This document shows positions 44,825 to 45,160 of a DNA stretch of 64,000 nucleotides, piece by piece; position 1 is the stretch's first letter, and each line of letters starts with the position of its first letter. The DNA lies in the NCBI GenBank assembly GCA_000320545.1, contig ADNK01000544.1, forward strand, positions 1 through 64,000, given 5' to 3'. Source of the stretch: Bigelowiella natans CCMP2755. Lineage: Eukaryota; Protista; Cercozoa. The translations under genes were made by a program, and so were the position numbers. A model generated the notes under the pieces. It did no database searches, was not told the origin of the DNA, and was given only the letters and a program-made list of their open reading frames with translations.

Positions 44825-44920
44825 GATCGCTATTGGTCTCCACTGCCTCGCTATTATTCCACACAGTTGATAATGGTGGAAATCGAATGGGTTTTAGCGA
44901 AGGTAGCTTCATATTTTCAG
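44825..44920 (-). promoter_or_regulatory. SECIS element 2 (distal) in the selenoprotein 3' UTR
   Basis: Minus strand: AUGAA (44912-44908), GCUACCUUCGCU, AAAA, apical arm UUCCAC/GUGGAA, AGCGAGGCAGU, GGAG (44841-44838). Confidence 0.8.
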
Positions 44921-45061
44921 AAATACGTCTTCTTATGTTTGTTCTCGATCGTTAGGCTTATTCTCCGCATTATTGACAAGTGCTGATTGCAAATGGTGAT
45001 AATGGTGATGATGCTGCATGCTATGCTATGGTCTTCTAAGAAGACGGCAAAAGCTGCTAAA

Positions 45062-45160
45062 TGCATATATTGTCTCCACTGCCTCACTCGATTCCCAACC
45101 ATGACTAAACTGGCAGCAGGGGAATATTGTTTTTTTAGCGAAGGCAGCTTCATATTCGCA
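45062..45160 (-). promoter_or_regulatory. SECIS element 1 (proximal) in the selenoprotein 3' UTR
   Basis: Minus strand: AUGAA (45153-45149), 12-nt GCUGCCUUCGCU, A-run, apical arm AUUCCC/GGGAAU, AGUGAGGCAGU, GGAG (45077-45074); imperfect lower helix UGCGAAU.../...UAUGCA. Confidence 0.83.

Follow-up and report, generated by a model that had tools for sequence, protein, structure and literature searches.

Why would a single 3′ UTR carry two nearly identical SECIS hairpins, and which codons would they serve? This question is raised by a short region of the window, which is the whole 64,000-nt stretch of Bigelowiella natans DNA analyzed here. The sequence-only reading had located a tandem pair of elements there by two shared motifs; both the location and the motifs were exact in a regular-expression check, and the elements are read on the minus strand. 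They are listed below with their scores in R1, a covariance model that was built from the two copies and in which the quartet and helix 2 were annotated.

45072..45153, minus strand: proximal SECIS (SECIS 1), AUGAA...GGAG-AC; R1 score 115.9 bits
45054..45167, minus strand: full proximal hairpin including helix 1, from the fold of a 146-nt context
44836..44912, minus strand: distal SECIS (SECIS 2), AUGAA/GGAG core plus AAAA; R1 score 104.9 bits

The regular-expression check places the shared 21-nt 5′ arms at 45153-45133 and 44912-44892 and the shared 17-nt 3′ arms at 45088-45072 and 44852-44836, all on the minus strand. A repeat search of 44700-45300 returned two direct-repeat families: one of 29 nt with 90% identity at a spacing of 241, and another of 17 nt with 94% identity at a spacing of 236. 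The sequence between the shared arms is 44 nt in the proximal copy and 39 nt in the distal copy; these lengths are slightly shorter than the 45-50 nt estimated by the sequence-only reading, although the arms themselves were given exactly. The flanking UTR consists of trinucleotide and dinucleotide microsatellites, as had been claimed.

Three structural features are common to both copies. One is the core quartet, in which AUGAA stands opposite GGAG; the base after the 3′ GA is G in both, and several other B. natans SECIS candidates are alike in this respect. Another is helix 2, which has 11 bp and one bulged U on the 5′ side, with an unpaired A run (AAAA) directly above it. The last is a helix 3 of 6 bp, whose register is shifted in the distal copy. 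The two apical stems that had been proposed, AUUCCC/GGGAAU and UUCCAC/GUGGAA, form in constrained and free folds alike. The 5′ internal loop is 11 nt long and led by AAAAAAA in the proximal copy, and about 14 nt long in the distal copy.

The copies differ in the remaining parts. Above helix 3 of the proximal copy there is an extra 4-bp stem with a 9-nt loop, and below its quartet a helix 1 that comprises about 13 bp and is interrupted by small loops; the unconstrained minimum free energy (MFE) fold of its 146-nt context already includes the whole SECIS fold together with helix 1. In the distal copy, helix 2 contains an A·C mismatch (G-to-A in the 5′ arm), one G·U has been changed into G-C, and helix 1 is G·U-rich and weak, forming only under constraint in the 146-nt context. 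The constrained distal SECIS fold has −24.7 kcal/mol as compared with −27.6 kcal/mol for the MFE, that is, 2.9 kcal/mol above it. Thus, the proximal copy is predicted to be the stronger, canonical one, and the distal copy to be slightly weakened. The energy z-scores of the isolated elements (−0.6 and −1.3) are unremarkable, and therefore folding energy alone is insufficient to flag either element. The layout of both hairpins supports their assignment as eukaryotic form-2 SECIS, that is, as a tandem SECIS pair, and for at least the proximal copy the SECIS identity is very probable.

The gene to which the pair belongs was clarified by transcript alignment. The relevant features are as follows.

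45609..49131, minus strand: coding part of a seven-exon gene (transcript alignment)
49131-48915, 48817-48564, 48474-48198, 48031-47953, 47695-47633, 47471-46297 and 46009 onward, minus strand: exons (alignment of transcript contig L008)
46298..46300, minus strand: UGA 1, Sec codon of the UGSC motif (..ALAD-U-GSC..), from the profile break, the splice site and homologues
46010..46296, minus strand: last intron, GT..AG, 287 nt, transcript-confirmed; it splits the Gly codon after the Sec codon
45615..45617, minus strand: UGA 2, penultimate codon (..E-C-A-T-U-H); next come CAT and TAG (45611-45609), the latter being the true stop
44761..45608, minus strand: 3′ UTR of at least 848 nt, with no introns and with both SECIS inside; L008 ends at 44761

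L008 is one of two JGI transcript contigs that were retrieved by means of a 124-aa ORF downstream of the TGA. It is 3298 nt long and 100% identical to the window in seven blocks, the last of which covers 46009-44761. This last exon includes both hairpins without a break and reaches at least as far as 44761, and the two elements thus belong to the mature 3′ UTR; the proximal element is located 462 nt and the distal element 703 nt past UGA 2. Three further contigs from other samples are 99.55% identical and end about 237 nt past the stop codon. A search for variants of the UTR among strains, by way of spurious UTR ORFs and of cluster members, led back to the same contig.

From its N terminus, the encoded protein has an 'Unknown_1'-type domain, a hydrophobic membrane insertion, then a linker of low complexity, and finally the UGSC domain. 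The searches were made with the natural transcript ORF and with each of the segments flanking the UGA, one at a time; none used a protein sequence joined or read through across the codon. Two profiles break at UGA 1: positions 5-68 of NCBIfam NF041046, a match below the family's own cut-off, stop at the TGA at 46300-46298, and the exon that follows takes up the match at positions 71-143, and Pfam PF24696 (UGSC), which is the sole protein family above the Pfam curated cut-off, shows the same break at the TGA and resumes past the intron. Because the profiles end there and restart in the next exon, this TGA corresponds to the U of UGSC. It sits 1 nt upstream of the last intron (TGA G|GT). Both UGAs are thus within the last exon or a few nucleotides from it, so that, under the usual rule of 50-55 nt for nonsense-mediated decay, shielding would follow; the positions of the two codons may in this way protect the mRNA.

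The second UGA is found 393 nt, or 131 codons, after the first. Clarification of its status can be obtained from the orthologous genes. With the natural 681-aa transcript ORF as the query, dozens of eukaryote fusions of the N-terminal domain and UGSC were found (dinoflagellate, EukProt and MMETSP sequences), and dozens of marine protist proteins, including those of the dinoflagellates Effrenium and Prorocentrum, have the fusion cut at the Sec UGA. All 20 of the eukaryote homologues inspected terminate in ..ALAD or ..GLAD, which indicates that the homologue proteins are cut at the first UGA. In the bacterial relatives (L011-L013), the N-terminal domain is encoded as a separate protein; bacterial members of the family would use the bacterial type of SECIS, located within the ORF. 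The tails of five orthologous contigs around the second TGA are as follows.

L014: ..ECAS-U-H
L015: ..ECKT-U-Q
L010: ..CGPNG-U-H
L026: ..GGC-U-G
L027: ..TS-U-C

In all six sequences, these five and that of B. natans, the second TGA is followed by one sense codon and then TAA or TAG, and the tails are otherwise unconserved. A true stop with another stop exactly two codons further on would be expected in about 5% of cases per sequence. From this contrast between six of six and about 5%, we conclude that the UGSC fusion protein is predicted to carry two selenocysteines, 131 codons apart.

The same orthologues provide information on the number of SECIS. In L014, both UGAs are present, and within 1.27 kb downstream a single SECIS is detectable, a related element in the same place. 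L027, L010 and L026 have one SECIS each, and these contigs end 48-190 nt beyond that SECIS. Since orthologues with both UGAs show one SECIS in the sequence at hand, the second element does not seem to be required, and the duplication looks lineage-specific rather than obligatory.

The next issue is whether the pair could arise by chance or could be of another nature. The 854-nt 3′ UTR was scanned with a SECIS-pattern script (anchors AUGA and GA, the first helix-2 pair enforced, the interior folded), and exactly two candidates were found, namely the two hairpins. When a strict filter (AUGA/GA, helix 2 and AA; both strands; cut-off of −14 kcal/mol or lower) was applied to the whole window, there were 5 hits, among which the two hairpins ranked first and second; the background of this filter is about 0.02 hits per kb. 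Two looser scanners served as aids on known 3′ regions only: a tolerant one, allowing long spans and interior loops, which was rich in false positives, and one based on pairing only, with 0.36 hits per kb. Elsewhere in the window, on the plus strand, a weak SECIS-pattern match (AUGAU..UGAU, span about 82-85 nt) was seen at 58742-58826; its 5′ arm is a GAT-type microsatellite, and it is probably a false positive.

The genome of 91.4 Mb (3736 contigs) was also searched. The 21-mer occurs in only two exact copies, and matches with three or fewer mismatches are at the level of a reversed-pattern control. In the whole genome at E ≤ 10, R1 found only the two copies themselves; on the fetched loci, its sole non-self pick-up, and thus its best non-self match, was the SECIS of the L014 orthologue, which was detected weakly. 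The sequence-only reading had regarded a covariance-model scan as a way to further selenoprotein UTRs, and none appeared beyond the two copies. It had also named, as the outcome that would speak against a SECIS pair, the occurrence of the same element throughout the genome with no link to UGA-containing genes; the pair is instead unique in 91 Mb. The idea of a dispersed repeat was ruled out on the same ground, neither the 21-mer nor R1 revealing a further copy in the 91-Mb genome.

The behavior of the public models needs to be considered here. No curated Rfam family matched the hairpins: a scan of the window at the gathering score gave no SECIS, and the Rfam SECIS_1 model (RF00031) returned nothing on 44500-45500 even at E ≤ 10. 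Genome-wide, RF00031 found one sub-threshold element elsewhere (24.8 bits against a gathering score of 35), and it scored none of the four GPx candidates described below and none of the orthologue SECIS. Because the model is nearly blind to SECIS in B. natans, an Rfam score is a weak test in this species, and the failure cannot be attributed to the long apex, since compact SECIS of the genome and of the orthologues are missed too. The earlier suggestion that the large apex lets the pair evade default SECIS models therefore holds for the evasion, as Rfam SECIS_1 misses both elements, and finds no support as to the cause. SECISearch3 filters candidates by apical loop length (PMC3753652). The number of selenoprotein genes reported for B. 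natans is 23 (PMC7539508). An alignment of seven compact SECIS with MAFFT was too low in quality for a general species model.

The absence of a curated Rfam family match, together with the modest z-scores, is also what would be expected if the hairpins were not SECIS at all, being instead a duplicated fragment of a repeat element, a miRNA-like precursor or a protein-binding UTR motif. However, the gene needs a SECIS and the pair are the only candidates in its UTR; moreover, all sequence hallmarks are present at the right spacing, no other genomic copies exist, and a related element is found at the corresponding place in the L014 UTR. We therefore regard a non-SECIS nature of the pair as extremely improbable.

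The apex was compared with those of other SECIS. Five B. natans candidates were used: those on the coding strand downstream of four Sec-GPx genes, and the sub-threshold element found with Rfam.

L016 1192-1151, minus strand: compact SECIS candidate
L017 60-6, minus strand: compact SECIS candidate
L018 2112-2159, plus strand: compact SECIS candidate
L022 245-197, minus strand: compact SECIS candidate
L007 1510-1558, plus strand: compact SECIS candidate

The AUGAA..GGAG core is present in most of these compact candidates and in the L014 orthologue. Between AUGA and the 3′ quartet, the pair spans 80 nt (proximal) and 75 nt (distal), as compared with 42-55 nt in the five B. natans candidates and 43-62 nt in four orthologues (43 in L027, 45 in L010 and 62 in L014, which have clear folds, and a similar span in L026, judged by eye). 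The apex itself, which the scanner measures from the first unpaired base after helix 2 to the 3′ arm, is 48 and 41 nt long in the pair, 12-22 nt in the five B. natans candidates, and 12-25 nt over all nine comparison SECIS of B. natans and the orthologues. In L015, the closest orthologue outside Bigelowiella, there is a tentative SECIS at 2141-2262 (plus strand) with a span of 122 nt; it is similar to the B. natans element in its 5′ arm, and its fold is not the MFE. Within the sample examined, the claim of an unusually long apex holds.

The two copies provide a clear contrast between arms and apex. The arms are identical at 36 of 38 positions, while the best global alignment of the apices has 26 identities in 44 positions as against 22.9 ± 1.8 for shuffles (P = 0.07); the difference between arm and apex identity is significant (Fisher p = 2e-4). 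The two arm differences, each a transition, affect paired positions: one is proximal G-C against distal A·C, with A in the distal 5′ arm, and the other is proximal G·U against distal G-C. The distal A is probably derived, since the tentative L015 element has G there, like the proximal copy. The apical stems share a UUCC/GGAA core with a shift of one register; the proximal stem has an outer A-U pair, and where it has C-G on the inner side the distal stem has A-U plus C-G, both stems keeping a length of 6 bp. The apical stems are homologous and not independent inventions, with one compensatory event (C-G to A-U). The co-duplicated apex is near-random in similarity while the arms remain 95% identical, a pattern that speaks for purifying selection having acted on each copy. 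The earlier proposal of structure-conserving selection after a duplication is thus borne out for the arms, where 36 of 38 positions stand against a randomized apex; for the apical stem it receives only modest support, namely the one compensatory change.

The same comparison bears on the possibility that only the proximal element works and that the distal copy is a duplicate that has lost, or is losing, its function, a situation comparable to that of human Sep15, in which the upstream SECIS-like element is inactive. The derived A·C mismatch in the distal helix 2, at a position where the tentative L015 SECIS has G, would be a sign of such decay, as would the weak helix 1 and the SECIS fold lying 2.9 kcal/mol above the MFE; the orthologues appear to be single-SECIS, and superfluous second SECIS are known in the literature (PMC2874816, PMC3473315). 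However, free drift should have made the arms diverge as the apex did, and the arms agree at 36 of 38 positions beside a randomized apex; the quartet, the AAAA run and, with one compensatory change, the 6-bp helix 3 have all been kept. An idle distal copy is accordingly a possibility to be taken seriously, if a rather doubtful one.

Folding of the two copies together was also considered. In the 391-nt region of 44800-45190, the predicted MFE structure is a nested hybrid in which the proximal 5′ arm is paired with the distal 3′ arm (−101.4 kcal/mol as compared with −98.0 kcal/mol for two hairpins); this is the only combination of arms that has neither a mismatch nor an internal wobble. The copies might therefore jointly form a long-range structure and switch between this nested form and the two hairpins. 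We give this model little weight, because the gap of 3.4 kcal/mol is within the error of the energy model and because such a hybrid is a generic by-product, possible for any tandem duplication of a hairpin. Furthermore, co-transcriptional folding favors the local hairpins, and the distribution of the two arm differences that makes this combination perfect has a chance expectation of about 1 in 4. A switch of this kind is hence very improbable.

With two Sec codons and two SECIS in one mRNA, it can be asked whether each element is dedicated to one codon, as the sequence-only reading had raised as a possibility. One element would then serve the internal UGSC UGA and the other the penultimate UGA, in a manner like that of selenoprotein P. 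Apart from the 393 nt that separate the two UGAs, this arrangement would fit the proposal of Turanov et al. (2013) that two distant Sec need two SECIS unless the element is position-independent, and the position-dependent SECIS function shown for TR1 (PMC3737529); mouse mutants of selenoprotein P likewise indicate distinct roles for its two elements (PMC5133445). However, the core and helix 2 of the B. natans pair are nearly identical and both elements are form 2, unlike the form-2/form-1 pair of selenoprotein P, and L014 has both UGAs with one detectable SECIS in 1.27 kb. We consider such a dedication unlikely, although it is a better candidate than the long-range switch.

The reading that we prefer is that both copies act additively or redundantly for both UGAs, neither being dedicated to one codon; we assign it a probability of roughly 0.55. 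That both copies are functional in one way or another, whether additively, redundantly or each for its own codon, is somewhat more probable still. Under the preferred reading, the history of the pair would have begun with the tandem duplication of a unit of about 100 nt, known to date from the B. natans lineage alone. The quartet, helix 2 and the AAAA run would then have been held nearly unchanged in both copies, presumably by selection, and the apex would meanwhile have drifted to near-random similarity with the 6-bp helix 3 kept. By analogy with established SECIS biology, each element would act as a kink-turn hairpin that recruits SBP2, eEFSec and Sec-tRNA(Sec), and the recruited factors would cause ribosomes to read UGA as Sec. 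The distal copy would most likely add recoding capacity for both UGAs, each copy being presumed active.

The pair belongs to known classes, form-2 SECIS and dual-SECIS mRNA, and has an unusually long apex. With form-2 SECIS (RF00031; PMC3753652) it shares the location in the 3′ UTR, the AUGA/GA quartet, helix 2 of about 11 bp, the unpaired A run right after helix 2, helix 3, and, in the proximal copy, helix 1 under the core. It differs from them in the long apex, the 5′ internal loop of 11-14 nt, the extra small stem above helix 3 of the proximal copy and the lack of a score with the Rfam model, and also in having GGAG as against the published consensus KGAW, in which the last base is A or U (PMC3753652).

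Among mRNAs with two SECIS, selenoprotein P (PMC5133445, PMC3737529) is the obvious counterpart: there, too, multiple Sec codons occur, one early and at least one C-terminal, a single 3′ UTR holds two SECIS a few hundred nucleotides apart, and an intron is close to the first UGA. In contrast, the B. natans protein is an unrelated fusion of the UGSC family with only two UGAs, and its SECIS are recent paralogues that are both form 2, whereas those of selenoprotein P are form 2 and form 1. Two SECIS for one UGA have been described in human Sep15 and Ciona SelW1 (PMC2874816) and in Nematostella Gpx_a and amphioxus Bf2DI (PMC3473315), where the extra element is probably idle (PMC2874816, PMC3473315). 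The B. natans gene resembles these four in having a lineage-specific extra SECIS-like element, possibly superfluous, in a UTR other than that of selenoprotein P; however, they have one UGA each and the B. natans gene has two distant ones, and the sequence pattern in B. natans argues that both copies were kept by selection. As for the protein, the gene belongs to the same family as the known UGSC selenoproteins (algal UGSC, PMC7539508) and is of the same fusion type as UGSC/Unknown_1, which was noted earlier (PMC2398784). In those published descriptions of UGSC and of the fusion that were consulted (PMC2398784, PMC7539508), neither a penultimate second Sec nor two SECIS are mentioned.

Two-SECIS mRNAs outside selenoprotein P are very rare, and the B. 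natans gene adds a case that has two Sec codons. With two SECIS of one core that differ in apex and stability, and with two distant Sec codons, it would offer a tractable system for the question of multiple SECIS and for that of how SECIS function depends on the position of the UGA (PMC3737529, PMC5133445). If the elements were specialized for their UGAs, the gene would represent, in a rhizarian alga, a natural and minimal equivalent of selenoprotein P and a direct natural test of the two-SECIS proposal of Turanov and Gladyshev, for which the orthologues with both UGAs and a single SECIS would act as internal controls. In addition, since the public Rfam model of SECIS is almost blind to those of B. 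natans, the selenoprotein UTRs of such protists would be under-annotated. Finally, the C-terminal Sec tails in the family take the forms C-x-x-U-x-stop, C-U-G-stop and S-U-C-stop, and the penultimate-UGA tail of the UGSC fusion recalls the GCUG tail of thioredoxin reductase.
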